A stretch of 64,000 nt of DNA, taken from Azolla caroliniana. Its lineage: Eukaryota > Plantae > Polypodiophyta. Within the stretch, counting starts at the first letter, position 1. Every line of letters begins with the position of its first letter. Below are positions 21,801-60,431 of the stretch, one piece after another. The position numbers and the translations under genes were made by a program. The stretch is taken from positions 9,610,001 through 9,674,000 of the forward strand of contig JBHGNT010000007.1 of assembly GCA_043228905.1 (NCBI GenBank), read 5' to 3'. Under the pieces are notes generated by a model. That model was given only the letters and a program-made list of their open reading frames with translations, ran no database searches and had not been told where the DNA came from.

Positions 21801-21930
21801 CATAATTGTAACATGTAGTTTTAAGTTCAATATTGACGGATATTTGGAATTAGAGGTTACAACTTAATATTGATGGATATTTGGAATTAGAGGCCATAAA
21901 TGTAACTGTATACATGTCGATTCAATACTG
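18880..21930 (-). repeat. Left tandem array of the tRNA-Glu-derived repeat (minus orientation)
   Basis: Reverse complement of the units at 41095-58437. One type-A tRNA-Glu copy (20385-20456) and four type-B copies (~19240, ~19992, ~21002, 21548-21619), three with partial internal duplications. Confidence 0.9.
20385..20456 (-). pseudogene. tRNA-Glu(TTC) pseudogene, type A
   Basis: TCCATTGTAGTCTAATTGGTTAGGATACTCGGCTTTCACCCAAG...CAATGGAA; T-arm damaged. Confidence 0.8.
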
Positions 21931-22330
21931 ATGTTGGAGCTTTTGTGCAGCCGTATTGGCCGCAAAAATCTTCTTGAGATTGGCCCACGCTTCTTTCGAC
22001 GTTTTCGACTCTCGAATATAACCGAGCATGTGATGATGAACGCATGATGCAAGGCAATACAACACACGGCTTGCGGCCTGCTCCACGATGGGTAGTCGGT
22101 GTATGTTGGGTTGGGTTGCGTTTCGTGAGCTCCTTCGATATAGCCTCCAGTAACCTTAACCGACAAGGTATTGATGCATCTTACATATTCCCAAGATGCA
22201 AAGTTTGTTCTGTCGAGCTTCTATGTAGGAAGAGCGATTCCCATCTGAGTATTCATGACGTCGATTACTTTCGATGTTGCTTGAACCGGTTCTGACGATT
22301 AACACAATTGAGCGAGTTTGATCAGATAAG
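21930..22330 (-). mobile_element. Copia 5'UTR/gag N-terminal fragment (family of elements B/D/E)
   Basis: MNTQMGIALPT*KLDRTNFASWE..KMHQYLVG...ANTAAQKLQ, fused directly to the array. Confidence 0.8.
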
Positions 22331-37700: not shown

Positions 37701-40019
37701 TTCCATGCTGTCTTTTGCTTCTTAGCGGGAATATTTTACCTGTGATGCACTGTACCGTAATTGGTTGAAAATTGAAGTCTCAAACACACAAATCACAGCT
37801 CTATCTATAGAAGAGAAAGAGATAGCCTCTGCTGCTGCCACAGAAGCTATTGGTGCAGCAACTTCATTTTTGCAGAGTATGATTTCTCTAGTCATGTCCC
37901 ATCAGTTCAATAATTCTTTATCAATGTCTTGGCTTATTGTATGCTTCATTTGAATTTGTAGGGAGAGGTTCCACATGGATGTCAGGTCAAGAATCATTGC
38001 CTGATTTTTATCCATCCCCTGCGTGGATTGAGCTGCATGCAGTTGGGGTACTTATTTCACCGTCTGGACAGTGTGTGGTGCCTGATGCAGCAATATGCAC
38101 AGCTTTAAAAACCTCTCTTTATTCTTGTGTGGATAAGGAAATTGGGATTCTCCGACAACTACAGGTATGGATTCTCCCGTGGTCCATTCTTTTCTCTTCT
38201 TTGGTTCCAATATAGATAATCAAATATCAAAATTTAATGCATAGCAGTAGTAAAGCATGCATAAAAGAGAGCCGGAAAACAATATCACAAAACACCAGGC
38301 TGACTGTCCTTCTGGAGTGTGCTACAAGGGTTGGATACATTAATTGGATCACATCTATAAGGTAAAGCATGACGGAAATCAATATGCATGAGTTGATGGA
38401 CAGATTATCATGAGAAAAGTGATGTAACGATGACAATATGTGTTTTTTGAGAGGGATATACTGTATGTTTCCATGCAAATATGTAGTTTGCAGTTGAACA
38501 TTGTATGTGCTCTCCTAGTTCCCTTGAACTAGCCATGCACATGTGTTGCATAGGTATTCACAACTTCATTGTGATAGTATTTTGAGTTGCTTGAACTTGC
38601 ACCTTTTCTAGTAGTGTGGAGCTCTAACTGCTACCTCGAACATCTCGGACCATAAATCTCTTTGCTAGTGCTCCATCCTAGTGTCATAGTGTGGGCATCT
38701 GAACTTAACTGCAACAGTATAGGAGTTAACCCAAGTTTGTGTATTACACACAATCAAGTTAGTATGCATAAGTTAACTTGGTTTACCTTAAAAGTACCTA
38801 TAGCATGTGAAGTTGAGGGAAAATCAACAGCACGGATCCCGCTGACAATTTTTAAGGTTTGATGATGAAAAAGGAACTCACTTTGGGTTGCCATTACAGA
38901 ATTTTCTTTTTCTTTTCTATGAAGTAAGTATTGTGTGATGCTGAAGCTTTTGGCTTTCAAAATGATGTTATGTAGGTCTATGAATTGGACTTCTGTATGA
39001 ATAAAGCTCTTGTTATTTCTTTAGGAAGGTTATAAGCAAAATAAGCTGTCGGCATAATTGATGCCCTACTTGTGTGCCTAGATCGGGACTGAAAAGATAA
39101 TTTCTGAAACACTATATGATACTATAATCAAACATGAACATTTTTTCACCACGACTCACGAGTCTGTAGAATCTGAAGTGCGAATTTGAATTGATTTTGT
39201 TTCAGGTTGAAATAGCGGAGTGTGGAAGTGCAAATGCTATCAATGTGCACTTACGATGTCTCTCTGTGAAGGGGGATGAAATTCGGAGCTCTTTAGATTC
39301 CAATGGTGGTCTGCTTGCAGCAGTTTTATCAACTTCAGTCAAAGGTGATTTGAATAAAAATAAAAAGTGCTTTACCTTCTTTAGCTCAATGAATTTATGA
39401 TTCGTGTTCTTGAAATTGATAGATTGTTGAGTCGGTGAATGTGTTTGAGGAAGAGTTGAAATGCTATTTTGTTCTTGATGGTGAATCAGGAGAACTAGAT
39501 CATTTTCGAGCAGCTTTGAGTATTTCACGATTGGATGCTTGGTTTGTTGATAAGGACGAAAAGTATCTACCTGCTGCTTGTATTAAACAAGGTCTATGCC
39601 GTCTTTGTTGCCTTCCAGAGCTTATACTACGGTGTATGCAGGTAGAAAATACACAAAATTAGGGTCACTTATGGCAAAAGTATACTTTTGACGAAAAATT
39701 GTTCACTTAATAAAAAGGATAACAAATATACTAAATTGATGGAGTTTTTATAGATGAGGGTTTCGCTACTAGAGTCAGATTGTCTGGTAAATGATGATGA
39801 TGATCTGGTTGAATACGTTGCATCATCTGAAAACAATATACACCAATTCTTCAGTCCGCAACAGTTGCAGGTGATAGATCAAACCCTTTTTTTCCTTGGC
39901 ATGTCTGAACTCCTTACAAATGTTTATACAAATAGTTTTGTTACTTGATGTAGGAATTCTTGCTCTTGGAACGAGAATACACATTGCAAATTATGGACAT
40001 GGCAGAAAGCGATAGCTAA
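22660..40019 (+). CDS. NUP107: Nuclear pore complex protein NUP107, 25 exons, ~1070 aa
   Basis: GT-AG exons with consistent phases: 22660-22742, 24052-24322, 24453-24528, 24986-25055, 26653-26768, 26923-26957, 27057-27176, 27263-27421, 27903-27995, 28066-28233, 29341-29442, 30900-31135, 31780-31837, 31995-32083, 32173-32304, 36689-36811, 36907-37002, 37083-37268, 37367-37538, 37726-37876, 37962-38164, 39206-39344, 39490-39641, 39754-39870, 39954-40019 (3213 nt). Motifs recognised from plant NUP107: EDRLMRQKAQ..EAATWSL, HLDPDAPTRE, LCRSAGQSWRAATL, RRLWKWA, WPQHVLDQQPRDL, MIRFGAH, CCLPELILRC, FSPQQLQEFLLLEREY. Confidence 0.93.
23683..23836. repeat. 78-bp tandem duplication in NUP107 intron 1
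   Basis: ATTAAGAATGCAATGGAG...GTAATGGCATGA at 23683 and 23761. Confidence 0.85.
25255..25972. repeat. 239-bp tandem triplication in NUP107 intron 4
   Basis: ACCAGTGTAGTCTGTTTCTG at 25261, 25500 and 25739; units nearly identical. Confidence 0.93.
28355..28795 (-). mobile_element. LINE fragment (RTE/RTEX-like) in a NUP107 intron
   Basis: HYKTHFLHTSEDGFII..IGQLQTSSHQLQIEVG, homologous to 11600-11750 and 33043-33291. Confidence 0.85.
32357..33893 (-). mobile_element. 5'-truncated LINE (~32357-33685) plus a second copy of its 3' end (~33686-33893) in NUP107 intron 15
   Basis: SKASVPHDIIR, IGQLRTSSH, ERICQLC..ESEEH. 3' end GGCCATTTTGGCC..GTTAATATATC followed by (TTTC/TC)n on the minus strand; 33709-33893 repeats 32377-32561. 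Confidence 0.9.
34025..34138. repeat. 38-bp x3 minisatellite inside a ~280-bp degenerate duplication (33938-34400)
   Basis: GCCGCAATTGA(G/A)AGTGCACACTATGATTGTGAGAGAAA at 34025, 34063 and 34101. Confidence 0.88.
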
Positions 40020-41082: not shown

Positions 41083-41153
41083 TTGGTTCTTGCGCATTTA
41101 ATCGATACGTGATGTATTTTATGTGTTAAGAATATTCAATTATTTCTAGCGAG

Positions 41154-41225
41154 TCCATTGTAGTTTAGTTGCATGGGATACTCGACTTTCACTAGAGAAA
41201 ATTGGGTTCCACTCCGGCAATGGAA
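41154..41225 (+). pseudogene. tRNA-Glu-derived copy, type B
   Basis: TCCATTGTAGTTTAGTTGCATGGGATACTCGACTTTCAC...GGGTTCCACTCCGGCAATGGAA; acceptor stem kept, B box altered. Confidence 0.7.
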
Positions 41226-41673
41226 GGATGATGTCATGTTTCTATACATACATCTTAGGCCAAAAATGTTTCGTATCTTCTAAAGTCAATTCAAAATTAG
41301 GTCTTACCATCAATATCTTATTAAATCTTATATGCTATTGTGGGATAGAATGATTGAGTCTATTCCCAATCATCGATAGAGATTTGAATTTGATGAAAAG
41401 TTTGCCTTCTATAATTGCCGATTGAACTCATTTTCACTCGTATGAAAGGTACGAGGTATATTGTTTAATTAAAGTAATGACATTTCTCGATAATTCATTC
41501 AAGAGGATAAAATCACATTTCACTTAAAAGGAAACATACTTGATGGTCTCCTTTAGTAAACCAAGAACCACGAAGGTAACACTAGGATATCATGCCTCAT
41601 CTTGCGTTTCCTCAATTTATGGTTAATTGACATTTTCGTTTATTTTAGAGGAAAATTCTTTAAATTTGTCAAC

Positions 41674-41746
41674 TCCATTGTAGTCTAGTTGGTTAGGATA
41701 CTTGGCTTTCACTCGAGCAACCTGGGTTCAAGTCTTGGCAATGCAA
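41674..41746 (+). pseudogene. tRNA-Glu(TTC) pseudogene, type A
   Basis: Plant tRNA-Glu-like body with several stem mismatches. Confidence 0.8.
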
Positions 41747-42085
41747 GCATCAAGTTGAGTTCAGGTGGCATTTCATATGAAAAAAGTCTCATAATTGAGA
41801 AATACAAGTGATAAAACCTAGTGGTACCATAATATATGTCTAATGACATAATGTACATGTATTGGGTTACAATTGTGGTCTCTAATTCTAACTATCCATC
41901 AGTATTGAATTTAAAAGTAAAATACTGTTCAAAAACCTAAAGCATATCATGTGTCTTGCACATTTAATCGTTGAATTTAAAGGCTAAATAGTGTTCAAAA
42001 TCCTAAAGCGTATCATGTGTCTTGCGCATTTAATCGATACATGACATATTTTATTTGTTAAGAATATTCAATTATTTCTAGCGAG

Positions 42086-42157
42086 TCCATTGTAGTTTAC
42101 TTGGATGGGATACTCGGCTTTCACTACAGAAAATTGGGTTCCACTATGGCAATGGAA
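42086..42157 (+). pseudogene. tRNA-Glu-derived copy, type B
   Basis: Same subtype as 41154-41225. Confidence 0.7.
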
Positions 42158-42208
42158 GGATGATGTGATGTTTCTAGACATCTTAGGGAAAAAATGTTTC
42201 GTATATTA

Positions 42209-45200
42209 TGTTGAGAGACAAGCTCAACATCGGCCAGTTCGGCTGAAGAAGCCGAGGACCGGATCGGTTGGGACCGATCGGTTAGGCCGAGTGCGTACAC
42301 CGGGAGGTCGTTAGGAAAGATATTCCGTGAAGAATATATTTGGGAGTTAGTGTAGGAGCTCTTGATGAGGATTGAAGTACTATCAGTACTTCGGTCAGTC
42401 CTTCTAGGACTTGTATAAAAATGTTCACTGAGCACGTCTTATGTACAAACTGAGTATTATTGTTGAATATAGCTTTTTGTGTCTTCTCTCTGTCTCTCCC
42501 GCGTATACCGTGTAAGCTCAAGCTCTCCATTGAACCTGAGTTTCCTTCCTTCTGTTCGGTCTTCATACTTGCTTCCGCACGTTGCTTTCTACATGGTATC
42601 AGAGCGCGAGGGTTGAGAACCTCTCTGCAGCCGACACAGCTTGACGAAGAAGAACGAGAAGAACGATGGATAGAGGCATGGCGAGCTCGCTTCCAACAGA
42701 GAAGCTCGACAGAACCAACTACGCGTCTTGGTCCTACAAGATGCACCAGTACCTGCTCGGGCACGACTACTGGAGTTATGTCGAAGGAGCTAATGACGCG
42801 GCACCCGAATCAACACACAGAGACTTCCCGTTGTGGGAGCAATTTGCGAGCAGGGTATTGTACTGCTTCGCGTTGTGTGTGGGCGAACAACTATTGAGCT
42901 ATGTTCGGGATGCAAAGACGCCGAAGGGTGCGTGGGAAAATTTGAAGAAGATTTTCGCTGCGAGCACCACAGCTAGGAAGCTTCAGCTCCGACAGGAGTT
43001 GAGCAACCTACGACAACTCGACTTGTCGGTGGCGGACTATACCTCGAAGATCAAGGATATCTGCGACTCCCTCGCCTCCATAGAGGTGAACTGTTAGGAA
43101 ACAGGTCCCTCCGGATGGGAAGGGAGAAGAACAGTGCCGACGAACAAACTCGGCCGAGGCCGACAGGCCGAGACCGAAACGGTATGAACCGGATGAGGAG
43201 TACCCGCATGCGGAGAGCCGGATGGTGTAGGCCCGGTATGAACCGGATGAGAAGACATATTCGTAAATATGTCTCTGAGAGCCCATCGAGGCTACGTTTG
43301 TAAATAGCCGAAAAGTCATATTAGTATGAATATGACTTAGGGCAAACTTTTATGTGTGTCGTTTTGTTGTTGTCATTCTTGTTGTTGGTGCAAGAAGAAG
43401 AGTGAGCGCATAACTGTACAGAGTGAGAGAGAGAGAGAGAGAGACGAGGTCGTTGCCTCTGTTGTAACCGCCGCCTGTGGCGAAGATCTGAGAGCACGAG
43501 GTCGTTGCCTCAGTGAACTCACTGTTGTATATTCTTACATAGTGACAGTTTGCAGCCCATGGGCTGCCGTGGTTTTTCCCCTATTTTGGGGTTTTCCACG
43601 TAAACCTCCTGTGTACCATTTCTTCCCTTTGTGTCGCGTTTTTTTTATTACCTGTTTTTCTTTGTATGAAAAGAATCTCGGTTGTGGCCGAGCGTCGGAC
43701 ATAAGGAACGTCGAGTTCTCAACATGAACATCGAGGAGAGCGAGATGGTCCAGATCTGTCTCAGAGGTTTGGCGTCGAAGTTCGGAGCGTTCCGAACAGC
43801 TGTGTGTACCCGGGAGAATAAGCCGTCCTTTTTCGACTTACAGTCGATGCTCCTGGTAGAGGAGAACCACGCGGGTGCGTCGACGAGCACGCACACCGAC
43901 AACAAGATGTTGTACACGGAGGGAGAAAGGCCCCGTGGTAGTGGCGGACGAGGCGAGTCGGTACGCAATGGAAGCGGCCGACGAGATCAAGGAAGAAGGC
44001 ACCAAAGTGATGCCGACAGCAACTCCGGACCCTCCGGAAACAGAGGGAGTCGAAGCGATGAGAACCGGCAAGGGAAGGCCATCGCGGAGTGCTGGTACTG
44101 TGGCAAGAAAGGCCACAGGGAAAGTGAGTGCTGGAAGAAGCGCGCCGATTCGGAGAGAACTGGTTCTGGAAACGGCTCCAGACATACTGACAAGGGAAAT
44201 TGGCAGCGATCGCACTACGCCGAAGACTCCGGGAGAGCCGGAGAAGGGCATGCCTTCGTGATGAGACACGAAGCAAACTCAATGAAACAAAGCACCCCGG
44301 GATCGGACGAGGTGTGGTACGTAGACTCCAGCGCGTCAAACCACATGACGAGCCATAAGGAGTGGTTCTCGTACCTTGAAAAACCGATAGAACCTGGAGT
44401 AGTCGCAACAGGAGACGATACTCCGCATCCGATCGCGAATGTTGGAGAAGTTCCCCTTAGCCATGTCGGGCAGAAAGGGAAACTCATGAACGTGCTGCAC
44501 GTCCCGACAATCACGAAAAACTTGGTCTCGGTCGGACAGATCGTCGACCAAGGGATGGAGGTTCGGTTTACACACCTCGGGTGCTTCATTGAGGAAGAAG
44601 GCCGTGTGATTGCGCAAGGGCGCAGAGACGGGAGGATGTTCATCCTCGACTCCACTGACGGCGGCACCGCAATGTTCGCGAAGGAACAAAAGACCGAGTC
44701 GGACATCGACTTGTGGCACAAGCGGATAGGCCACGTCAACCACCAACGACTTCAAGATCTGCAATCGAAACAGGTAGTGTTTGGATTGCCCAAGTTTAGT
44801 GGCTGAAAGGCACAAGTTTGTGAAGCTTGCCAACTCAGGAAGCAACACCCACTTCCTTTCCCCAACGAGCGAAACCGGAGCCAGAACAAGCTCGACCTTA
44901 TACACTCCGATGTATGGGGACCGGCACAAAACGTTAGTCTTGGCGGGAGTCGATATTTCGTCTCCTTCATCGACGACCACACGCGACACAAGTGGATCTA
45001 CCTCATTGAGAGGAAGAGCGAAGTCTTCGACTGTTTCCGGGACCTCAAAGGGTTCGTGGAAGCCGAAACGGGACGAAAGATCAAGTGCTTGCGGTCGGAT
45101 GGCGGGAAAGAGTACTTTTCCGGTCAAGTCAACGGTTACCTACAACAAATGGGAATTCGCCGCGAATTCAGTTGTAGATACATGCCAGAGCAGAACGGCG

Positions 45201-48200
45201 TGGCCGAGAGAAAGAATCGGTCAGTTGTGGAAGCGGCACGGGCAATGCTGGAGGAGAAGAGCTTGCCCAAGTTCTACTGGGCCGAGGCGGTAAGGACCGC
45301 GGTATACATCCAAAACCGGATCGGAGACAAAGTGTCGGCGCACGAGCTATATTTCGAAACGAAGCCGAACTTGCGACACTTGTGGGTGTTCGGTAGCATT
45401 GCGTATGTGCATGTACCGAAGGAGAAAAGGAGGAAGCTGGACGCAAAGGCCGAGAAATGCATCTTGGTTGGTTACTCGGACGAGCAGAAGGGTTATAAGT
45501 GTTATAACCCTCGCACCAAACAAGCGCGTGTTAGCCGCGACGTTGTGTTTGACGAGTCCGCGTCCTGGTACCTGCCCCCGACTACGAACCTTGACTCCAA
45601 TCCGAGCTCTGACGATGAGGTCAGCGAGGCCGAGATGCCTCCGGATGAGCCCAAAATCGAGACCCGCGAAGAGAGTCCGATTTCGCTCTGTTTAAGTGGA
45701 CCGATTGGACGACTGAGTCGGTACGACCAGTCCGATGAAGAGACGGCGAGTAGTGGAGACTCGGCCGTGCATTCCCCGCGCAGGAGGCCGAGGAGATGGC
45801 TTACGTGCAAAGAGAAAGGGAAGAAGAAGGTGTCGGATTCCAGCACGGAAAGGAACGAGTCAGACCGACTCGAGTCCGACTCCGAGGGAACCGGTGACGG
45901 GTCTTTAAAGGCGAAGGCCGCGTCGACTGAGAAGGCCTCGACATCGGCTAATGTGAGATTACGCCGATCTACCCGCCAGAAGAATCCTGTTTTGCGGTTC
46001 GGATACAACGAGTAAATGGCGCATCATTATGCGTACATGACCCGTGTAGCGGAAGTGCGTGAGCCGGAGAGCTACGCAGAAGCGGCGAAGGATGCGAATT
46101 GGCGCGCCGCGATGGAGGAAGAGATGCATGCGTTGGCGGAGAATGAGACCTGGGACCTGGTTGACGCACCAATAGGGGTAAAATCGATCGGGTGTAGGTG
46201 GGTGTACAAGGTCAAGTACAACACCGATGGCTTGGTCAACCGGTACAAGGCTCAGCTAGTGGCAAAGGGCTACGCGCAGAAGCACGACATCGACTACGAT
46301 GAGACATTTGCGCCGGTCGCGAAAATGACGACTGTCCGTGTCTTGCTCGCAGTAGCCGCGGCCAAGGGGTGGCACTTACATCAGATGGATGTAAAGAATG
46401 CGTTCCTGCAAGGTGACCTTGAGGAACAGGTGTACATGGTACAACCCCCCAGACTTCACTCTGGAACGAACTCCTCGGCAGTATGCCAACTAAAGAAGTC
46501 CCTTTACGGATTGAAGCAAGCCCCGCGTGCCTGGAACGCGAAGATCACGCAACAATTGCGTCGGATGGGCTTCGTCACGTCAAAATCGGACTCTTCCTTG
46601 TTCATCCGGAAAGGTCGACTCGGACCGGTTAGTATTTTACTGTATGTTGATGACTTGGTCATCACCGGCGCCGACCTAGGTGAAATCGACCGCGTGAAGC
46701 TCCAGCTTGCGGCATTGTTCGACATGAAGGACCTGAGAGACCTTCATTACTTCCTCGGGATCGAAGTGATCCGTACCCCCCAAGGCATATTGATCAGCCA
46801 ACGTCATTACGTGCTGAGTATGCTCTTCAAACTCGAGATGGCCGACTGTAAGTCCATCTCGACTCCTCTGGACAGAACCGTCAAGCTTCGTCCCGATACG
46901 GGAAAGGTATGCGACCCGACGAGGTTCCGACGAGGTTCAGTGTGCGCAACATGTACTTCGGTACGTAAGCGGCACTAAGGACCACAGACTGCTATATCGG
47001 ACCGGTGCAACCGCGCAGTTAATCGGCTACACCGATGCTGATTGGGCTGGCAACACCGTCGATCGCCGATCCACGTCTGGATACGCGTTCTCCCTCGGGA
47101 GTGCCGCGATTGCGTGGTGCAGTAAGAAGCAGCCGACAGTTGCTCTGTCGAGCACCGAAGCTGAGTACTGAGGAGCGGCTGTCGCGACATGCGAAGGCAT
47201 ATGGTTGAAGCGGCTACTTAAGGACCTGCAAGAGGAGGTGACCGATCCAACGACGATCTACTGCGACAACCTCAGCAGCATCCAACTCGCGAAGAACCCC
47301 GTCTTCCACGCACGGACCAAGCACATTGAGGTGCACTACCATTTCGTCCGTGAGCGTGTCCTTTCCGGTGAAGTCGAACTTCAGTACGTTCCGACGGATT
47401 GGCAGGCTGCCGACATCTTCACCAAGCCTCTTGGTCTAGACAAGTTGCGGCAATTCTCAGGTGCGCTCGGGTTGCGTCACCTTGACGTGCCAAACTTGAG
47501 GGGGAGAACAGTCCTGAAAGAGCAAGCAAGGCAGCAGGAAAGGAGCGGACACCGCGACACCGAGTCAGTTGACAAGTTCGACATCGGATTGGCTGAAGAA
47601 GTCGAGGGCGGACCCGCGAAAAAGTTCGGAAGCAGACAGAAGGGGAGCAACCGAAGGAGAGAGCCGAAGCCAACCACGCATGGGGAAGATGACGCCATCG
47701 AAGGCGAGAAGACCGAAGACGAGTTGGAGACAGCCAACTCGGACAAGAGCGAAAACCGATCGGAGGTAGCCGAGTCGGTTCGGATGTTTGATTCAGACAC
47801 ATTGAATCAACCGAGGCCCAAGCGGAAGAAAAGGCAACAGAAGAAGTGTCGACACCGCAATAACAGAAGAGCTGATAAGGGCCGCATGAGCAGACGAGCC
47901 GACCGGAAGGGTCGAAGTGCGCGGAGTCGAAGAGGTCGAGGAGCGCGAGCGAGGCGTGAAGCCAGGAGGAACCAGAGCTGTGAGCCCGAGGATCCCGAAG
48001 AGCCTCGAGTTGAGCTTGAGGGGGAGTGTTGAGAGACAAGCTCAACATCGGCCGGTTCGGCTGAAGAAGCCGAGGACCGGATCGGTTGGGACCGATCGGT
48101 TAGGCCAAGTGCGTACACCGGGAGGTCCTTAGGAAAGATATTCTGTGAGGAATATATTTGGGAGTTAGTGCAGGAGCTCTTGATGAGCATTGAAGTACTG

Positions 48201-48411
48201 TCAGTACTTCGGTCAGTCCTTCTAGGACTTGTATAAAAATGTTCACTAAGCACGTCTTATGTACAGACTGAGTATTATTGTTGAATATAGCTTTTTGTGT
48301 CTTCTCTCTGTCTCTCCCGCGTATACCGTGTAAGCTCAAGCTCTCCATTGAACCTGAGTTTCCTTCCTTCTGTTCAGTCTTCATACTTGCTTCCGCACGT
48401 TGCTTTCTACA
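42209..48411 (+). mobile_element. Ty1/copia element C with both LTRs, decayed
   Basis: 385-bp LTRs at 42209-42593 and 48027-48411 (~11 substitutions by eye). TSD TATTA. PBS TGGTATCAGAGC at 42594; PPT GAGGGGGAG at 48018-48026. gag-PR-IN-RT(YVDD)-RH with stops and a deletion near 46930. Confidence 0.97.
43092..43724 (+). mobile_element. Solo LTR (Tnt1/Tork-like copia) inside the gag of element C
   Basis: TGTTAG...CTCAACA with TSD TGAAC (43087-43091 and 43725-43729). gag reads ..SIEVN|IEESEM across it. Shares the CCGTGGTTTTTCCC..GGGTTTTCCACGTAAA motif with the LTR at 60432-61090. Confidence 0.92.
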
Positions 48412-48916
48412 TATTACACACTCAATTCAAAAGTAGGTCTTACCATAAATATCTTATTAAATCTTATATACTATAGAGGGTTAGAATTATTGACTCTATT
48501 CCCAATCAAAGTCAATTCAAAATTAGGCCTTACCATAAATATCTTAATAAATCTTGTATGTTATAGTGGGTTAGAATTATTCACTCTATTCCCAAACATT
48601 TATGACTCTTTGAATTTGATAAAAAAATCGTCTTCTATAACATAAAGCTTAACATAATTGCCGATTGAACTCATTTTCACTCGAATAAAGGGTACGGGGT
48701 ATATTCTTTAATTAAAGTAATGACATTTCTCGATAATTCATTTAAGCGGATAAAATCACATTTCACTTAAAAGGAAACATACTTGAAGCTCTCCTTTAGT
48801 AAACCAAGAACCACAAAGGCAACCCTAGAATATCATCTGTCCTCTTACGTTTCCGCAATTTATGGTTAATTGACATTTTCATTTATTTAAGAGAAACATC
48901 CTTCACCTTTGTCAAC

Positions 48917-48989
48917 GACATTGTAGTCTAGTTGGTTAGGATACTCGGCTTTCACTCAAGCGACTTGGGTTCAAGTCCCGACATTGGAA
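48917..48989 (+). pseudogene. tRNA-Glu(TTC) pseudogene, type A
   Basis: A and B boxes present; acceptor and anticodon stems mismatched. Confidence 0.75.
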
Positions 48990-49593
48990 ACATCAAGTCT
49001 AGTTTAGGTTGCATCTCATACAAAAAAAAATCTTATAATTGATTGACCAATGCAAGACATAAAACGTTGTGGTGACATAATCTACATGTATTGGGTTACA
49101 ATTGTGGCCTCTAATTCCAAATATTCATAAGTATTGAATTTAAAAGTATAATACATGTTCAAAAACCTAAAGCATATCATGTGTCTTGTGCATTCAAAAT
49201 TTGGTCTTTCCAGAAATATCTTATTACATCTTGTATGTTATAGTGGGTTACAATTATTCACTCTATTCCCAATCATCGATGGGTCTTTGAATTTGATAAA
49301 AAATTCGGCTTCTATAATACAAAGCTTAAGATAATTGCCGATTGAACTCATTTTCACTTGTATGAAAGGTAAGAGGTATATTGTTTAATTAAAGTAACAA
49401 CATTTCTCGATAATTCATCAAAGATGAAAAAATCACATTTCACTTAAAAGGAAACATACTTGAAGCTCCTCTTTAGTAATCCAAGAACCACGAAGGCAGC
49501 ACTAGGATATCATGTGTCATCTTGTGTTTCCACAATTTATGGTTAATTGACATTTTCTTTTATTTTAGAGAAAAATCCTTCAACTTTGTCAAC

Positions 49594-49666
49594 TCCATTG
49601 TAGTCTAGTTAGTTAAGGTACTCGGCTTTCACCCGAGCGACCCGGATTCAAGTCCCGGCAATGGAA
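49594..49666 (+). pseudogene. tRNA-Glu(TTC)-like copy, near intact
   Basis: Acceptor stem TCCATTG/CAATGGA and anticodon arm CTCGG-CTTTCAC-CCGAG are perfect; D-loop GG and one T-stem pair are mutated. Confidence 0.8.
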
Positions 49667-49804
49667 ACATAAAGTCTAGTTCAGGTTGCATCTTCTACGG
49701 AAAACGTCTCATATGACAAATACAAGACATAAAACGTTGTGGTGACATTATCCACATGTATTGGGCCTCTAATTCCAAATATCCATAAGTATTGAGTTTA
49801 AAAG

Positions 49805-49862
49805 TGTAAAGAATCAAGAGATTGATTCTTGTGAAGCAGAAGTGATATGAGTTATGTGTGTG

Positions 49863-49907
<45 letters not shown>

Positions 49908-52900
49908 AGGAATACACAAGGTAAAGGTATATTGACAAAGGAGAAAGACTCAACATTATACAAGGTGGGAGGAAGGCTCATGGAGCATGGGGAATGTGAA
50001 AGCTCATAAGTTATGTGTCATAGAATATGATTCTATGACTCATACTAAATGCTAGAATACAAAGTGGTGACATAATGGTGACTCTTGACCGTTGAGGTGT
50101 CTCTTCACTCTCAAGGTGAGTTCACACACTAGACCAAGTTGAGCTTGATTCTCAACACGCCCCCTGAAGCTCAAGTCGGGTCAGTTTCAGACGGTATCCG
50201 AAATCCGCTTCAATTCACGTTCGGGAGTCCGCGTCGACTCGCTTTATGTGGAGTTGCGGAATCTGTGCTCCAGTTGTGCGTAGTTACGAAGTCTGTGCTT
50301 CGGCTTGCGTGCGTAGTTGCGAAGTCTGTGCTTCGGCTTGCGTGCGTAGTTGCGAAGTCTGTGTTTCGGCTTGTGTCTTTCTTCGCGGCTTTGCGCGGTA
50401 GATCGGCTCTTTGTTGCTACGGTGTGTGGTTTCGGAATCTACGCGTTATTGCGTAGTGTCTTCAGTACTCCCCCTCAAGCTTGGCAGATTAGGGATCGTC
50501 AATCCGAGATCGGTCATGAATTGCCATAGCTTGTCGGCTCCTAAGGCTTTAGTGAAGATGTCGACCGTTTGAAGATTGGTGCTTATGTGTTGTAGATCGA
50601 CATCGCCAGCCAAAACGCGCTCTCGGATGAAGTGATAGTGCACTTCGATGTGCTTTGTCCTCGCGTGGAACATCGGGTTCCGAGCCAGATAGATACTGCT
50701 CATGTTGTCGCAGTAAAGGGAAGTCGGATCCTTGATGGGTACGCCCAGATCCTTCAAAATCCTCTTGAGCCATACGGCTTCACACGCAGCTACGGTTGCG
50801 CCCCTGTATTCCGCCTCCGTACTCGAAAGAGCGACGATGGGCTGCTTCTTGCTACTCCAGAATAATTCTCCGCTGCCAAGGGAGAAAACAAATCCGGAGG
50901 TTGATCTTCTATCGGCTTTGTAGCCGGCCCAATCGGCGTCTGTGTACCCCTCGAGTCGTATTGGCATCGCGGTCTTGTAGAGGATGCCGCAATCCATTGT
51001 GCCGCTCACGTACCGTAGAACTCGCTTAGCGCAATCCAAGTGAGTATCACGCGGTGTTTGCATGAATTGGCTAAGGAGACCGACCGGATAACTGAGATCG
51101 GGTCGAGTGATCGTGAGGTAGATGAGACTCCTGATGAGTTGCCGATACTGAGTCGGCTCACACGCTTTGGTGCCGGAGTTTGCATCTAGTTTGAGATTAC
51201 GATCGAGCGGGGTTGCCACGGATTTGCACTCAGCCATCCCGAACTTGTATAATAAGTTGAGGATGTAGTGCCGTTGAGAGATCATGATTCCGGCCGGAGT
51301 CCGAATTACCTCGATGTCGAGGAAGTAGTGGAGCTCCTTCATGTCTGTCATCTCGAACTTGTCGGAAAGGAGGGATTTGACCTTATTGATTTCGACGAGA
51401 TGCTCACCTCCAATGACTAGGTCATCCACATATAAAATGATGACGATCGGACTTGCGGAATCGCTTCGTATGTAGAGGGAGTTGTCTGATTTTGACATAC
51501 GGAAGCCGATTTGATGAAGATATTGCGTTATCTTCGAGTGCCAAGCACGCGGTGCTTGCTTGAGGCCATAGAGTGGCTTCTTGAGTCGGCATACAACTTT
51601 CGGATGGGTGCTCGAGTTGAAGCCGGGTGGTTGTAGCATGTACACCTCCTCTTCTAATTCGCCTTGTAGAAAGGCGTTCTTGACGTCCATTTGATGGAGG
51701 TGCCACCCTTTCTCCGCGGCAATCGCAATTACGGTACGCACCGTCATCGTCTTTGCCACTGGGGCAAAGGTTTCTTCGTAGTCGACGTCATGTGTCTGAG
51801 CGTATCCTTTCGCTACGAGTCGAGCTTTGTAGCGGTTGACGGAACCATCGACGTTATACTTCACCTTGTAGATCCCACGTCTCGTTCTTCCGTAGTGCCT
51901 ACATCTCCTCATTCATTGCTTCGATCCATCGAGGGTCCTTCACGGCTTCCGAAAAGGTTTCCGGCTCCCGTACTGTCGCTACTTTCATCATAAAGGCGTA
52001 ATGGTACGCCATGTAATTGTTGTAGCCGAATCGACTTACGGGGTTCTTTTCACGAGTGGATCGGCGGACCTTTTCATTTGCAGAGATGAGGGCTTTCTTT
52101 GCTCCGATTGGTACCTCGAAACCGCCGAACTCACTGTCGAGTGAGTGAGTTGACTCATCGTTGGTGAAGCGATTGTCTTCGTATTCCACCATTTTCGCCT
52201 TGCCTTTGTCCATCTTCGGGCTAGGCCGTGATGTGCTTTGATCGCTCAAAGGCTCTTGTGGTCCACTCAGTCGGGTCGTGATCGGACTTTCTTCGAACAT
52301 GCGCGTAAGGTGATCTTCATCCTCTATCTCTTGTTCGATGGATTCCGGGTCGAGCGGGGTCGGAGTCGAAGTTGTCTCTGGTGCGTACCAGGATGCAGAC
52401 TCGTCAAAGACGACGTCTCGACTTACTCGAGATTGTCGAGTTGAAGGGTTGTAGCACTTGTACCCCTTTTGCTCCAGTGAGTATCCTACGAGGATACATT
52501 TCTCCGACTTCGGGTCGAGCTTTTGACGCTTCTCGTCGGGGATGTGCACGTACGCAATGGAGCCGAATATCCGAACATGTGATAAGTTCGGCTTCTTTCC
52601 AGATGTCGTGCACCGGTTCATTAGGTAGATGGTCGTATTTGCCGCTTCGGCCCAATATGACTTGGGCATATGCTTCTCGTTCATCATGGCCCGCGCTACT
52701 TCGAGGATGTGCCGATTTTTGCGCTCGGCTACTCCGTTTTGTTGCGGAGTGTGTCGGCAAGTGAATTCTCGTTGAATTTCTTCCTTTCGGAGATATGCTG
52801 TGAAATCGTCCGAGAAGTACTCCTTGCCGCCATCCGATCGAAGGCATCGTACATGTCGGCCCGTGGCTTTCTCGACTTCATTCTTGAAATTTTGGAAGTG

Positions 52901-54947
52901 TCCGAACACTTCGCTCTTTTGCCGCATCGGGTAGATCCAAGTGTGCCTAGAAAAGTCGTCGATGAAGAGCACGTAATAGCGGCATCCGCCGAATGTCGCC
53001 GTTTGAGCTGGACCCCATACATCGGAATGAATTACGTCGAGTACGCCTTTGCTCACATTCCGCTCCTTCGGAAATGGGTGTCAGTGTTGCTTGCCGAATT
53101 GGCACGCTTCGCATACACCTTCAATCTCCTTCTCTTTGAATGTCGGGAGTCCGATGACGACTCCTTTCGATTTCATTGGTTTGAGTTTGTTGAGATTGAT
53201 GTGGCCGATTCGCTTATGCCATAGCTCTATGTCGGAGTCGGCTTTTGTGCTTTTCGCGACCATGGCGGATTTCATCTCGTGCGAATTGAGAATGAACATC
53301 CGGCCCTCTCTTCTTCCACGTGTGATGATTCAGCCTTCTTTTTCGATGAAGCACCCTTCTTGGTCGAATCGTACTTGCATCCCTTGCTCAACCATTTGGC
53401 CGACCGAGACCAAATTCTTTGTGATGGTGGGTACATGCAAGACATTTTTAATGTATGTTTGTTTACCTCTTTCACTGAAGGGAACATTGCTGATGTGCCG
53501 AATCGGGTGCGTAGTGTCATCTCTGGTTTCCACATAACCGGGTCGCTCCGGCTCTCGAAGTTCAAGAAACCATTCTTTGTGGGATGTCATATGGTTTGAG
53601 GCTCCGGAGTCAACAAACCATACGTCTTCCGGACCGGAGGCACTAGTTGAGGTAGTGGCTGACATAGAGTTTGCTCTATGTTTCATCATGAACATTCCGC
53701 CACGGTCGGAGTTGTGCGCATACATTCCGCCACGATCTTCGTAGTCGGAGTTGTGTGCGTAATTCGTGAGTTGTCGGCTTGTGGAAGCCGATTCACGCAT
53801 CTTCTTTTGGCACTCGTCTTCGTGGTGGCCGAGCTTTCCGCAATATCCACATTCGGTTGTGTTTTGACGGCTCGGGCCGGAGTGGAAGCTCCCCCTTCTT
53901 GCGAAGGTTCCTCGTTGGCCTCGGTTTTGCGACCGAAATTGGGAGTTGCTGTTGTAGGTCGGACCTCATCATCATCTATACTTACGCTTATTGAGCCGAG
54001 CAAGTCGCAAAGCTCCTTGATCTTCAAGGTGTATGTCGTGATGGACATGTCCCTTTGTTGAATGTTTTTCAACTCTTGGCGGAGTGGAAGCTTCCTCGCG
54101 GTCGTGTTGGCGGCGAAAATCTTTCGTAGATTTTCCCACGCTTCCTTCGGCGTCTTGGCTTCTCGAATGTAGCCGAGCATGTGGTCGTGAACACATGTTG
54201 CCAAACAATACATCACGCGGCTTGCGGCTTGCTCCCATGTCGCGTATCCAGGAGCCGCTTCGGCGGGTCGGTCTTCATGCGCTCCTTTGATGTAGCTCCA
54301 ATAGCCTTGTCCGACAAGGTATTGATGCATCTTGTACTCCCAAGATGCGAAGTTGTTTCGATCCAACTTCTCGGTAGGGAGAGCGCTCACCATTTGAGTA
54401 TTCATTATGTCAATTCTTCTTCTTCTTCTTCTCTCTTCGAATGCGAGCTATGTAGCGAAGCTACGATAGCTATGAGCCGGTTCTTGGTCGTCGGCGTAGA
54501 TCACAACACACGATCACGATGAGGCGAATGGGCTAGATCGAGCTACCAAATCGCTCCGATACCATGTAAAGGATCAAGAGATTGATTCTTGTGAAGCAGA
54601 AGTGATATGAGTTATGTGTGTGTATGAGAGAGAGAGAGAGAGAGAGTGAGAGAGACAAGGAATACGCAAGGTAAAGGTATATTGACAAAGGAGAAAGACT
54701 CAACATTATACAAGGTTGGAGGAGGGTGCTTTATGTAGTCACTCTCTCTCTTCATTAACTACAAGGCTCATGGAGCATGGGGAATGTGAAAGCTCATAAG
54801 TTATGTGTCATACAATATGGTTCTATGACTCATACTAAATGCTAGAATACAAAGTGGTGACATAATGGTGACTCTTGATCGTTGAGGTGTCTCTTCACTC
54901 TCAAGGTGAGTTCACACACTAGACCAAGTTGAGCTTGATTCTCAACA
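49805..54947 (-). mobile_element. Ty1/copia element D with both LTRs and small internal deletions
   Basis: 3' LTR 49805-50157, 5' LTR 54565-54947, TSD AAAAG (49800-49804 and 54948-54952), PBS 54553-54564. ORFs: gag 53686-54405, protease 53330-53800, integrase 51899-53056, RT/RH 50446-51912. Confidence 0.97.
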
Positions 54948-55405
54948 AAAAGTATAATACGTGTTGAAAACCTAGAGCGTATCATGTCTCCTACGCATTC
55001 AAAATTAGGTCTTACTATAAATATCTGATTAAATCTTGTATGTTATAGTGGGTTAGAATGATTCACTCTATACCCAATCATCAATGACTCTTTGAATTTG
55101 ATAACAAATTTGTCTTGAATAAAATAAAGCTTAACATATTAGCCGATTGAAGTCATTTTGACTCATATGAAAGGTACGAGGTATATTGTTTAATTAAAGT
55201 AATGACATTTCTCGAAAATTCATTCAAGGGGATAAAATCACATTTCACTTAAAAGGAAACATACTTGATGCTCTCCTTTAGTAAACCAAGAACCACGAAG
55301 GTAACACTAGGGTATCATGTGTCATCTTGCGTTTCCTCAATTTATGGTTAATTGAGATTTTCTTTTATTTTAGAGAAACATCCTTCAACTTTGTGAACTC
55401 CATAC

Positions 55406-55478
55406 TCCATTGTAGTCTAGTTGATTAGGATACTCGGCTTTCACCCGAGTGACCCGGGTTCAAGTCCCGACAATGGAA
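55406..55478 (+). tRNA. tRNA-Glu(TTC), best-preserved copy, probably a pseudogene
   Basis: TCCATTGTAGTCTAGTTGATTAGGATACTCGGCTTTCACCCGAGTGACCCGGGTTCAAGTCCCGACAATGGAA: cloverleaf except D-loop GG>GA and one T-stem mismatch. No adjacent oligo-T terminator. Confidence 0.55.
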
Positions 55479-55973
55479 ACATCAAGTCTAGTTCAAGTTG
55501 CATCTTATAGGAAAAAAGTCTCATAATTGACAAATACAAGACATAAAAGCTTGTGGTGACATAATCTACATTTATTGGGTTACAATTGTGGCCTCTAATT
55601 CCAAATATCTATACGAATCGAATTTGAAAGTATAATAATACGTGTTGAAAAACCTAAAGCATATCATGTGACTTGCGCATTCAAAATTAGGTCTTACCAT
55701 AAATATCTTATTAAATCTTGTATGCTATAGTGGCTTAGAATTATTCACTCTATTCCCAATCATTGAGGAATCTTTTAATTTGATAAAAATTTCGTCTTCT
55801 ATAACATAAAGCTTAACATATTAGCCGATTGAACTCATTTTCACTCGTATGAAAGGTACGAGGTATATTGTTTAATTAAAGTATCGACATTTCTCGATAA
55901 TTCATACAAGGAGATAAAATCACATTTAACTTAAAAGAAAACATACTTGAACCTCTCCTTTAGTAAACCAAGA

Positions 55974-58285
55974 ACCATTGTAGTCTAATTGGTTAGGATA
56001 CTCAGCTTTCACCGGAGCGACTCGGGTTCAAGTCCAGCCAATGGAAACATCAAGTGTAGTTAAGGTTTTAGCTTATACGAAAAAAATCTCATAATTGAGA
56101 AATACAAGACATAAAACGTTGTGGTGACATAATCTACATGTATTGGGTTACAATTGTGGCCTGTAATTCCAACTATCCGTACTTATCGAATTTGAAAGTA
56201 TAATACATGTTGAAAAACCTAAAGTGTATCATGTGACTTCATAATTAGGTCTTACCATAAATATCTTATTAAATCTAGTATGTTATAGTGGGTTAGAATT
56301 ATTCACTCTATTCCCAATCATTGAGGAATCTTTTAATTTGATAAAATTTTTGTCTTCTATAACATAAAGCTTAACATATTAGCCGATTGAACTCATTTTC
56401 ACTCGTATGAAAGGTACGAGGTATATTGTTTAATTAAACTATCGGCATTTCTCGATAATTCATACAAGGAGATAAAATCACATTTCACTTAAAAGGAAAT
56501 ATACTTGAAGCTCTGCTTTAGTAAACTAAGAACCACGAAGGCAACACTGGGATATCATGTGTCATCTTGCGTTTCTGCAATTTATGGTTAATTGACATTT
56601 TCTTTTATTTTAGTGAAAAATCCTTTAACTTTGTCAACACCATTGTAGTCTAATTGGTTGGGATACTTGCATTTCACCCGAATGACCTGGGTTCAAGTCC
56701 CGGGAATGGAAACATCAAGTGTAGTTCAGGTTGCATCTTACACGTAAAATGTCTCATAATTGACAAATACAAGACATAAAACCTTACGGTGACATAATCT
56801 ACATGTATTGGGTTACAATTGTGGCTTGTAATTCCTAATATCCATACTTATCGAATTTGAAAGTATAATACGTGTTGAAAAACCTAAAGCATATCATGTG
56901 ACTTGCGCATTCATAATTAGGTCTAACCATAAATATCTTATTAAATCTTGTATGCTATAGTAGGTTAGAATTATTCATTTTATTCCCAATCATTGAGGAA
57001 TCTTTTAATTTGATAAAAAAATTGTCTTCTATTACATTAACCTTAGCATAAAATGCCGATTGAACTCATTTTCACTCGTATGAAATTTATGAGGTATATT
57101 GTTTAATTGCTGGTTAGCGGGAATATTTTACCTGTGATGCACTGTACGGTAACGAGGTATATTATTTAATTAAAGTAACAACATTTCTCGATAATTCATT
57201 CAAGGGGATAAAATCATATTTCACTTTAAAGGAAACATACCTAATGGTCTTCTTTGGTAAACCAAGAACCACGAAGGCAACACTAGGATATCATGTGTCA
57301 TCTTGCGTTTCTGAAATTTATGTTTAATTGATATTTTCTTTTATTTTAGAGAAACATCCTTCAATTTTGTCAACGTCATTGTAGTCTAGATGGTTAGAAC
57401 ACTCGGCTTTCACCCGATTGACCCGGGTTCAAGTCCCAGAAAGAAGCTAAAGCGTATCACGTTATTTCGCCATTTATTGTTAATTGAGATTTTCTTGAAT
57501 TTCAGAGAAAAATCCTTTAACTTTGTAAACTCTGTTGTAGTCTACTTGGTTGGGATAGTTGGATTTCACCCAAACGACTTGGGTTCAAGTCTCGGGAATG
57601 GAAACATGAAGTGTAGTTCAGGTTGCATCTTACACGAAAAATGTCTCATAATTGACAAATACAAGACATAAAACCTTGCGGTCACATAATCTACATATAT
57701 TGGGTTACAATTGTTGCCTCTAATTCTAAATATCCATAAGTATTGAATGTATTGGGTTACAATTGTTGCCTCTAATTCCAAATATCCATAAGTATTGAAT
57801 TAAAAAGTATACTACGTTACTTGTTGAAAAACTTAAAGCGTATCATGTGTCTTGCATATTCAAAATTAGGTCTTACCATAAATATCATATTAACTCTATT
57901 CCCAATCATGGATGACTCTTTCAATTTTTTAAAGACTTTGTCTTCTACAACATAAACCTTAACATATTAGCCGATTGAACTCATTTTAACTCGTATGAAA
58001 GGTACAAGGTATATTGTTTAATTAAAGTAACGACATTTCTCGATAATTCATTCAAGGGGATAAAATCAAATTTCACTTAAAAGGAAACATACTTGAAGCT
58101 CTCCTTTAGTAAACCAAGAACCATGATGGCAACACGAGGATATCATGTATCATTTTGCGTTTTCACAATTTATGGTTAATTGAAATTTTCTTTTATTTTA
58201 GAGAGACTTCAACTTGATCAACTCTAGTTGGTTAGGATAATTGGATTTCACGTGAGTGACCTGGGTTCAAGTCCTGGCAATGGAA
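55974..58285 (+). pseudogene. Five further degenerate tRNA-Glu copies (55974-56046, 56639-56711, 57375-57437, 57531-57603, ~58223-58285)
   Basis: Each keeps recognisable A-box/anticodon sequence and GGGTTCAAGTC, with stem mismatches or truncations. Confidence 0.75.
57109..57152 (+). other. NUP107-derived filler sequence inserted in the array
   Basis: 57114-57147 is identical to 37722-37755 (intron acceptor TTAG plus the start of exon 20), flanked by a ~20-bp duplication of array sequence. Confidence 0.92.
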
Positions 58286-58437
58286 ACATTAAGTCTAGTT
58301 TTGGTTGCATTTTATACGAAAAAAGTCTCAGAATTGACAAATACAAGAAATAAATCCTGGTGGTGATATAATCTACATGTATTGGGTTACAATTGTGGCC
58401 TCGAATTCCAAATATCCAGAAGTATTGAGTTTGAAAG

Positions 58438-60431
58438 TGTAAAGAATCGGTTATGATTCTTGTGTAGCATAAGAGATGTGTGTTATGTGTATGAGTGAGA
58501 GGAATTAGAGGAGAGATGACGAAACACAAGATAGATAGAAAAAGGAATACTCAAGAAGAAGGTGTATATTGCACAAGTAGAATAAGAATTACAAAATGTA
58601 GCATAATAAGGAGTCACAACCGACTTAGTATGAAGTGTGAGGAGGGTGCTTTATATATAGTCACCCTCTCTCTTCATTAACTAACTACAACAACCACTCT
58701 CTCTCTTGGGGAATGTGAAGACTCATAGTCATGGGGAATATGTAACTCATTAGTTATGTGTCATAGAATATGATTCTATGACACATAGTTAATGTGTAGA
58801 GGGTGGTGGTGTGTCTGTTGACCTTTGATTCTCAAAAGGTGTGTGCACACGTTGTGCTATGTTGAGCTTGATTCTCAACACGCCCCCTGAAGCTCAACTC
58901 GGGTCGGTTCCTTTTGATTGATGTCCGCTTCGGCTGGTATCCGGTTCGGACGATCTCCGGTGTCCATTTCGGCTTGTAACTGGTTCGGACGGTATCTGGT
59001 TCTCGCTTGTACTCCCCCTCAAGCTCAGCAAGTCAGGGATCGTCAATCCAGTCATCCAGAACTTTTATAACAAGTTGAGGATGTAGTGCCGTTGAGAGAT
59101 CAAAATGCCGGTCGGAATTCGAATTACTTCTATGCCAAGGAAGTAATGGAGCTCCTTCATGTTCGTCATCTTGAATTAGCCGGAGAGGAGGGACTTGACC
59201 TTGTTGATGTCGACTAGACTTTCACCTCCAATGACCAGATCATCCACGTATAGGATGATGACAATTAGGCTTCTAGAGTCGTGTCATACGTAGATGGAGG
59301 TGTCGGATTTCGACATTCGAAAGCCGTTTTGATGAAGATATTGCGTAATCTTCGAATGCCAAGCACGTGGTGCTTGCTTGAGGCCGTAGAGTGGCTTCTT
59401 GAGTCGGCACACGGCTTTCGGATGAGTACGCGATTCGAAGCCGGGTGGTTGTACCATGTACACCTCCTCTTCTAATTCGCCTTGAAGATAGGCGTTGTTG
59501 ACGTCCATTTGGTGGAGGTGGCACCCTTTTGTTGTTGCAAGTGCAATCACGGTCCGCACTATCGTCATCTTTGCCATTGGGGCAAAGGTCTCTTGATAGT
59601 TGATTCCATGTGTTGCTACCTTCATCATAAAGGCATAATGGTATGCCATATAATCATTGTAGCCGAATCGGCTTACGGGGTTCTTTTCACGGGAGGATCG
59701 ACGGAGCTTCTCGTTTGCGGATACTACAACTTTCTCCGCTCCATTTGTCCGGATCTCAAGGCCTTCGAACTCACTGTTGAGGGAGTGAGTCGATTTGTTG
59801 TTGTCGAAGTGATCATCTTTATACTTCGGCATTTTTGCCTTCCCTTTGTCCAGCTTCGGACACGACCGAGATGTGCTTTGATCGCCTGGGGGCTCTTGTG
59901 GCCCACGTTGCATAGTCGGCGTCTTCCGGGTCGGGTCCGTTTTCCTGTGCTCCCTTGATGTAACCCCAGTAGCCTTGGCCGACAAGGTATTGGTGCATCT
60001 TGTACTCCCAAGATGCGAAGTTGTTTCGGTCCAACTTCTCGCTAGGGAGAGCGCTCTCCACTTGAGTATTCATTGTCGATTAAGCTTCCTTTCTTCTTTT
60101 CCTTCTCTTTCAAACACGAGCTATGTAGTGGTATTGCGATAGCGATGAGCCGGTTCTTCTTGAACGTTGGCGTAGAGCACAACACACGATCACGATGAGC
60201 CGAGTGGGCTAGATCGAGCTACCAAATTGCTTTGATACCATGTAAAGAATTGGGTATGATTGTTGTGTAGCAGGAGAGATGTGCCTTATGTGTATGAGTG
60301 AGAGGAATTAGAGGAGAGATGAGAGAACACAAGATAGATAGAAAAAGGAATACTCAAGAAGAAGGTGTATATTGCACAAGTAGAATAAGAATTACAAAAT
60401 GTAGCATAATAAGGCGTCACAACCGATGGAG
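58438..60431 (-). mobile_element. Ty1/copia element E, internally deleted (non-autonomous); 5' LTR interrupted by element F
   Basis: 3' LTR 58438-58880, PPT at ~58881-58890, PBS 60229-60240, 5' LTR from 60241 matching 58438. Gag N-terminus is fused to the post-integrase linker, with partial RT. Confidence 0.9.

Follow-up and report, generated by a model that had tools for sequence, protein, structure and literature searches.

A NUP107-derived filler between duplicated motif copies in a tRNA-Glu array: a probable scar of templated break repair

One unit of a degenerate tRNA-Glu array carries a 39-bp segment that is private to that unit, derives from an intron–exon junction of the neighbouring NUP107 gene and lies between two near-identical copies of an array motif. 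We consider it likely that this arrangement goes back to one templated-filler event in the repair of a break in the array, during which the target was duplicated as well, and that it persists today as a neutral scar; within this reading we infer the enzymology, the one-step origin of duplication and filler, and the neutrality. As judged from its sequence, the scar belongs to a known kind, error-prone break repair with templated filler, and documents it well. It is a clean natural case, in a plant-type genome, of such a filler accompanied by duplication of the target; the donor is known to the base and the template was unspliced. Scars of this type record both the DNA that lay near a break and the germline repair route. 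Taken alone, this one is no more than an ordinary neutral scar, and it would carry more weight only if the array acted on NUP107 through the filler.

The window (the whole stretch of Azolla caroliniana DNA analysed here, 64,000 nucleotides long) was searched against itself with BLAST to delimit the array. The insert lies in a plus-strand block at 54940–58480; further plus-strand blocks lie at 41090–42160 and 48400–49830 and an inverted, minus-strand block at 18880–21950. LTR retrotransposons and the NUP107 gene lie between these blocks. The array is a degenerate tandem with one tRNA-Glu(TTC)-like sequence per unit, in which units are about 560–850 bp long and 79–89% alike. ARAGORN called six tRNA-Glu copies in the window and Rfam seven, with several others too decayed. 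The insert-bearing unit and its downstream neighbour (56436–58023, plus strand, from unit homologies of 82–89%) hold two tRNA-related sequences: a degenerate tRNA-Glu-like copy at 56638–56710, missed by ARAGORN and Rfam alike, and a weak tRNA-Glu(TTC) at 57374–57447, called by ARAGORN and scored by Rfam at 29.7 bits against a cut-off of 29. A literature search for a tRNA-Glu satellite yielded nothing useful.

The donor is a multi-exon, plus-strand gene situated between the inverted array blocks, and homology identifies it as NUP107, a Nup84/Nup107 nucleoporin. Exons were searched singly: all four exon pieces matched Pfam PF04121 (Nup84_Nup100), three of them above the gathering cut-off and one at 20.9 bits against 22.5, and the two later exons matched the solved NUP107 (9sob_L) with E-values of 5e-8 and 4e-9. 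The exon at 37338–37538 corresponds to residues 613–672 of 9sob_L and ends in ...IQEW, while the exon at 37726–37886 corresponds to residues 674–721 and starts R-EYFTCDALYRNWLK, with EYFTC... aligned from residue 674 and EYFTCDALYRNWLK aligned with EYYSCDAKYRNWLK of the solved protein. Because these two exons abut at residues 672/674 and both are phase 0, the bounds of the intron between them are fixed at 37539–37725 (187 bp, GT..AG, with the GT at 37539 and the acceptor ...TTGCTTCTTAG immediately before CGG). The donor segment (37715–37760, plus strand) comprises the last 11 nt of this intron and the first 35 nt of the following exon, with the exonic codons R-E-Y-F-T-C-D-A-L-Y-R. Donor exon and intron are both intact and conserved, so the segment was copied, not cut.

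Positions 57114–57147 are identical over 34 bp to 37722–37755 on the same strand (TTAGCGGGAATATTTTACCTGTGATGCACTGTAC), and the window contains this 34-mer at these two places only. In blastn the match extended to 46 bp (57107–57152 against 37715–37760) with three mismatches (93.5% identity, E 1e-13), the donor lying 19.4 kb from the filler, in cis. Exact search and blastn between them reproduced what the original prediction had described, a same-orientation match of 34 exact bp within 46 bp with three mismatches, some 19 kb off. Chance was ruled out as the source of this match: in 50 order-1 Markov simulations of the gene region (19 kb), exact matches between array and gene reached at most 13–16 bp, against the 34 bp observed. 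Filler and donor differ at 2–3 of 39–46 positions, and these differences crowd towards the two ends of the insert. At about 7% divergence a perfect central stretch of 34 bp has a calculated probability of about 0.07; it is thus unsurprising, and the mismatches may have arisen as polymerase errors or by mutation afterwards. The sole candidate second template found for the mismatched junction bases was a 9-mer, TTGCTGGTT, the reverse complement of 37103–37111, which is too short to decide the matter.

The uninterrupted state of the recipient site was reconstructed by alignment of ten other array units, which give the consensus ...CGTATGAAAGGT-ACGAGGTATATTGTTTAATT-AAAGTAAC... without a break. The unit at 57.1 kb instead reads ...CGTATGAAATTT-ATGAGGTATATTGTTTAATT, then the filler GCTGG-TTAGCGGG...CTGTAC, then GGTAA and finally CGAGGTATATTATTTAATT-AAAGTAAC. 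When the array blocks were scanned against each other for coverage, no other unit covered the filler (57109–57147, plus strand), and its flanks were covered by 11 and nine units; the coverage scan, the exact 34-mer and blastn together define the filler and its origin. Its first five bases (57109–57113, GCTGG) match the gene (GCTTC) at three positions of five.

On the left, the motif copy ATGAGGTATATTGTTTAATT (57089–57108, plus strand) aligns to the single motif of the ten other units; its certain core is 57091–57108, its left edge may reach about 57085 if GGTA counts as duplicated, and array homology from this side stops at 57108. On the right, the alignment of empty sites places the second motif copy ACGAGGTATATTATTTAATT at 57152–57171 (plus strand), followed by the normal continuation AAAGTAAC. 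The five nucleotides GGTAA (57148–57152, plus strand) are ambiguous in both the alignment of empty sites and blastn. Read from the gene they correspond to CGTAA, with one mismatch, and read from the array they correspond to the consensus GGTA-C, with one extra A; in blastn, array homology begins at 57148 and gene homology runs to 57152. The two readings together make these bases an imperfect microhomology of 3–4 nt at the right junction. Since GGTAA can be read either way, the gene-derived part measures 39–46 bp and the duplication 18–24 bp.

The duplicate copies (57091–57108 and 57154–57171) are identical at 17 of 18 positions, with one G/A difference; with the preceding dinucleotide (A followed by T or C) included they agree at 18 of 20, the added difference being C/T, a CpG-to-TpG change. 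At position 57087 all four read sets described below have G where the window has T; this G brings the left copy (..TGTATGAGG..) nearer to the consensus GGTACGAGG, which tips the balance a little towards the longer duplication. At the left junction, ...AATT of the array and ...TTTT of the gene, just before GCT, have TT (2 nt) in common, and the right junction shows an imperfect GTA/GTAC microhomology of 1–4 nt, depending on how GGTAA is assigned; each is compatible with a templated filler but too short to be significant alone. What the original prediction termed a repeat-spacer-repeat geometry stands as regards the two flanking motif copies, both of which are present where it placed them, and comes down to a plain target duplication with filler.

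Copying ran from gene to array, as none of the other array units has the sequence, which is conserved coding sequence of a nucleoporin; the reverse direction is ruled out on the same two grounds. The copied segment includes at least four and up to 11 intronic nucleotides upstream of the acceptor, in addition to 30–35 exonic nucleotides. With intronic bases present and the splice site fixed by the exon alignments, an mRNA template, or a retroposed mRNA-derived fragment, is ruled out, and the template must have been genomic DNA or unspliced RNA. The original prediction had argued the same from an intronic acceptor within the insert, and the back-to-back alignment of the two exons to solved NUP107 confirms the splice junction on which that argument depended.

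We propose that a tRNA-Glu array unit was broken at or close to the motif GAGGTATATTGTTTAATT, the break being staggered or resected, and that a free 3′ end then primed on NUP107, 19.4 kb off in cis, where the intron that ends at 37725 has its acceptor. About 39–46 nt would have been copied before the end was let go, and the released end would have joined, or re-primed on, the array 18–24 nt upstream of its departure point. Rejoining that far behind the point of departure would leave the array motif on both sides of the filler. The likeliest form of such an event would be fill-in of the overhangs of a staggered break, followed by polymerase-theta-type end joining with templated insertion; an SDSA-like excursion would be the alternative form. 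Templated insertions mostly come from within tens of bases of a break, and a donor at 19 kb is less usual.

Several features agree with this proposal. The insert is absent from the paralogous, uninterrupted sites, and its template is intact and matched beyond chance, as expected of a templated filler. Pol-theta end joining in Arabidopsis has such fillers as its hallmark, and other donor molecules can supply them (PMC10923293). The insertions described there resemble the present one in being short, with an identifiable template, an intact donor, junctions compatible with microhomologies of 1–4 nt and mismatches near the junctions, and in that the donor can be other DNA nearby. Unlike them, the present insert is natural, old and fixed rather than induced; its template lies 19.4 kb off rather than in the immediate flank, and the break site bears a duplication rather than the usual deletion.

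Staggered breaks with complementary overhangs that are filled in before joining give rise to short tandem duplications, and fill-in of overhangs by Pol alpha-primase/CST has been shown (PMC8355091); a patch-mediated model from rice and paired-nick experiments in plants, as cited in PMC8355091, likewise concern small tandem duplications. Here too a direct target duplication of 18–24 bp, with near-identical copies, adjoins the junction, and other small duplications occur in the same arrays. Fill-in followed by NHEJ yields a clean tandem duplication, whereas in the present case a foreign 39-bp filler separates the copies. In natural footprints of rice, SDSA fillers of 1–123 bp are common (PMC4423477). 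The SDSA-type fillers at double-strand-break and transposon-excision footprints of grasses (PMC4423477) compare with the present case in that a foreign genomic copy patches a break, its size falls within this range and a gene fragment has been moved without its function; they differ in that no transposon takes part here and the duplication at the flanks greatly exceeds a target-site duplication in length. The attribution to SDSA or polymerase theta made in the original prediction holds at the level of the general signature, which agrees with all three of these sources (PMC10923293, PMC4423477, PMC8355091), but the exact pathway is not legible in the sequence.

The same anatomy is predicted by a replicative template switch (FoSTeS/MMBIR), in which a stalled nascent strand would have left the array, copied about 40 nt at a fork or single-stranded stretch nearby within NUP107 and returned 18–24 nt behind its departure point. 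A same-orientation templated insert, microhomologies of 1–4 nt and a flanking duplication would all follow, the return behind the departure point creating the duplication; a donor 19 kb off in cis could be reached by neighbouring replication forks, and forks may plausibly stall in a repeat array. Such switches resemble the present case in drawing templated inserts, in direct orientation, from kilobases away in cis. They are usually invoked for larger, complex rearrangements, and at this site no sequence feature separates them from end joining (TMEJ) or SDSA. The experimentally documented plant source of short fillers, however, is Pol-theta end joining (PMC10923293), and we regard replicative switching as unlikely.

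The intronic bases also leave room for an RNA template, with unspliced NUP107 pre-mRNA copied, under priming from the right break end, by a reverse-transcribing repair polymerase or the reverse transcriptase of a retroelement. The insert is in sense orientation and includes intron, as pre-mRNA would; a GTAC/GTA microhomology may have served at the right junction, and LTR retrotransposons lie within the array. Genomic DNA explains these features equally well, however, and a nascent transcript 19 kb off is no better placed than the DNA itself; the insert is 39–46 nt only and bears neither poly(A) nor a signature of reverse transcription. We therefore consider copying from RNA very unlikely.

All array blocks of the window (about 9 kb) were scanned for private segments of at least 6 bp, block edges excluded. 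The scan returned four: the NUP107 filler, a 22-bp tandem duplication (21180–21201), a 27-bp diverged segment (57438–57464) and a 6-bp segment (19542–19547), and it found no templates elsewhere for the last three. The roughly 9 kb of array in the window thus contain no foreign insert other than the NUP107 filler, a result that does not bear out the suggestion that arrays of this kind routinely capture pieces of neighbouring genes. Several other small tandem duplications occur in the window's arrays, one of them at the motif GAGGTATATTGTTTAATT.

In the minus-strand unit at 21.2 kb, the same motif has undergone a 23-bp tandem duplication (21173–21215) with no foreign filler, and directly after it the unit switches into another part of the unit via TTTAAT. 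The existence of this duplication indicates that the motif can duplicate on its own, and so lends something to a two-event history in which a small tandem duplication came first and the filler was later inserted exactly at its junction. Such a history requires a second break to fall exactly on the junction of the duplication, and the two duplications have different boundaries and are separate events; the empty state of the 57.1-kb site, for its part, is that of ten paralogous array units rather than of allelic or orthologous sites, which tells against certainty in a single step. On balance two successive events seem decidedly improbable. The cases at GAGGTATATTGTTTAATT offer hints of a locally fragile site, although three cases do not establish one.

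Under the preferred reading of one repair event, the differences between the duplicate copies (1/18, or 2/20) mean that the event is not recent and that details of the junctions may be blurred. Array units differ among themselves by 11–21%. From these values, together with the 2–3 of 39–46 positions at which filler and donor differ, the event postdates amplification of the array yet is of some age, which fits the presence of the insert under two organism labels.

A role for the filler in regulating NUP107 was also considered, the original prediction having raised the possibility that siRNA or Pol III read-through RNA from the array targets the gene. As a trans-acting element, the array would direct such RNA at the NUP107 splice acceptor through the insert. 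Perfect identity over 34 nt suffices for small RNAs of 21–24 nt, and the insert is unchanged under the two organism labels. Under the inverted-duplication model, miRNA and siRNA genes arise from inverted copies of target genes that form a foldback. Here, by contrast, there is a single sense copy with neither an inverted partner nor a hairpin: folding of 57040–57220 (181 nt) was no better than that of shuffled sequences (z 0.43), and revealed no hairpin or other structure around the insert. Three T4 runs (56978, 57003 and 57069) lie between the tRNA-like copy at 56638–56710 and the insert, and these runs, together with the degenerate state of that upstream copy, make it unlikely that Pol III read-through would get as far as the insert. 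None of the runs recorded as RNA carried the stretch, and NUP107 is intact, with conserved exons. The array is also less depleted in CpG than the gene region (observed/expected 0.79 against 0.36) and so, by this measure, gives no sign of long-standing heavy CG methylation. These observations speak against the targeting proposed, and a functional trans-acting element appears extremely unlikely.

A bolder form of the same idea makes the array a source of 24-nt siRNA whose 34-nt NUP107 segment would direct, in trans, methylation or a splicing effect at the 37725 acceptor; in a weaker form, GAGGTATATTGTTTAATT would be a recurrent fragile site that samples nearby chromatin at repair. The weaker form counts the present event, the 23-bp duplication and a deletion junction in other units at GAGGTATATTGTTTAATT. 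Were the bolder form true, a repair filler would have wired the silencing machinery of a satellite to an essential neighbouring gene; we hold this to be highly improbable.

Excision of a DNA transposon, leaving a target-site duplication (TSD) and filler, or capture of the fragment by a Pack-MULE, Helitron or LINE, would also place gene sequence within a duplication. Most transposon excisions examined in rice leave fillers (58/94; PMC4423477), and retroelements have hit this array repeatedly. A duplication of 18–24 bp exceeds any DNA-transposon TSD, and the private segment derives from the gene throughout and lacks terminal inverted repeats, transposon ends and poly(A); these points leave a transposon footprint only the slimmest of chances.

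Lastly, repeat arrays misassemble easily, and the window does depart from all four read sets at 57087 (T against G), yet an assembly or chimeric-read artefact has a negligible probability here, as both junctions occur at single-copy depth in contigs from three independent studies. Logan contigs (k=31) from four runs were compared with the window over 56800–57500. In two runs, X2 and X3, a contig covers 57056–57143 with one difference, 53 and 35 of its letters bridging the left junction. In three, X1, X2 and X3, a contig covering 57118–57194 or 57118–57210 without any difference includes 30 letters of the 34-mer and then runs on into the array. The former contigs stop at 57143 and the latter begin at 57118, just as expected, because k=31 unitigs break at a 34-mer common to a second locus: 57143 is where the first 31-mer with the private base 57113 comes to an end, and 57118 is where the first with 57148 starts. 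The junction contigs have depths of 16, 45–55 and 10–12, equal to those of neighbouring single-copy contigs, and the independent studies that contain the insert number three, with two organism labels (A and B) among them.

Raw long reads had been named in the original prediction as the check for an artefact; on short-read contigs the insert proved to be present. The one apparent empty allele, joining 57078 to 57152 in X2, was rejected on the grounds that its letters are those of the paralogous unit at 48.7 kb. In X3, the contig that matches the insert continues into TTGGTTGAAAATTGAAG..., which is the gene itself.

NUP107 lies between inverted blocks of the degenerate tandem tRNA-Glu array, one on the minus strand to one side of the gene (18880-21950) and one on the plus strand (41090-58480). 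LTR retrotransposons interrupt the plus-strand block between about 42.2 and 48.4 kb and between about 49.8 and 54.9 kb, the second interruption with LTR-like repeats at 49813/54573; a further element, with LTR-like repeats at 58483/60286, starts at about 58.48 kb. CpG observed/expected stood at 0.79 in the array blocks (GC 32%) versus 0.36 in the NUP107 gene region (24000-40000). As CpG decay is thus weaker in the array than in the gene, a long-methylated satellite is a poor fit to the array.

At the left junction of the filler, the segment copied from NUP107 into one array unit, the 9-mer TTGCTGGTT (57107-57115) is the exact reverse complement of 37103-37111, a site within the gene that precedes the main donor by 611 bp. 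This 9-mer covers both mismatched bases of the junction, and 37103-37111 may have served as a short initial template in a two-step switch, although nine bases are too few to decide.

The motif that flanks the filler on both sides is also rearranged in a different array unit, on the minus strand, where it is duplicated in tandem at 21173-21215 (23 bp; ATGAATGGTACGAGGTATATTGT / ATCAAAAGTATGAGGTATATTGT), without foreign filler. The second copy resembles the unit variant ..CTTATCAAAAGT|ACGAGG, observed solely at the loose ends of read contigs, and owing to this likeness may have been templated by a different array unit. Directly after the duplication (21150-21192, minus strand), the motif end ..GTTTAATC passes into GATACGTGACAT.., which belongs to another part of the array unit (compare ..CATTTAATCGATAC at 41088). 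This third rearrangement junction at the motif looks like a deletion via shared TTTAAT.

The 5′ portion of the NUP107 region also has array-like sequence: each unit of a tandem repeat there (three copies of 239 bp) carries a match to the array consensus in reverse orientation (25341-25360, 25580-25599 and 25819-25838; 20 nt exact, 22/23 overall), with its counterpart just upstream of the tRNA (TTGACATTTTCTTTTATTTT). These 20-nt matches exceed the longest array-to-gene matches in simulated gene regions, yet are AT-rich and of low complexity, and could reflect either chance or reciprocal array-to-gene filler.

About 550 bp downstream of the filler, the same array holds a 52-bp tandem duplication (57698-57800; 98% identity), evidently young; duplications of 49, 66 and 90 bp in the arrays are older and common to different units. 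A 27-bp segment (57438-57464) that overlaps the 3′ terminus of the 57374-57447 tRNA had no coverage from other units under the blast settings used; it looks like a strongly diverged form of the usual ..CCTAAAGCATATCATGTG.. spacer rather than foreign DNA. Position 57087 is T in the window and G in contigs of all four read runs, reflecting either a difference in the source individual or an assembly consensus error.
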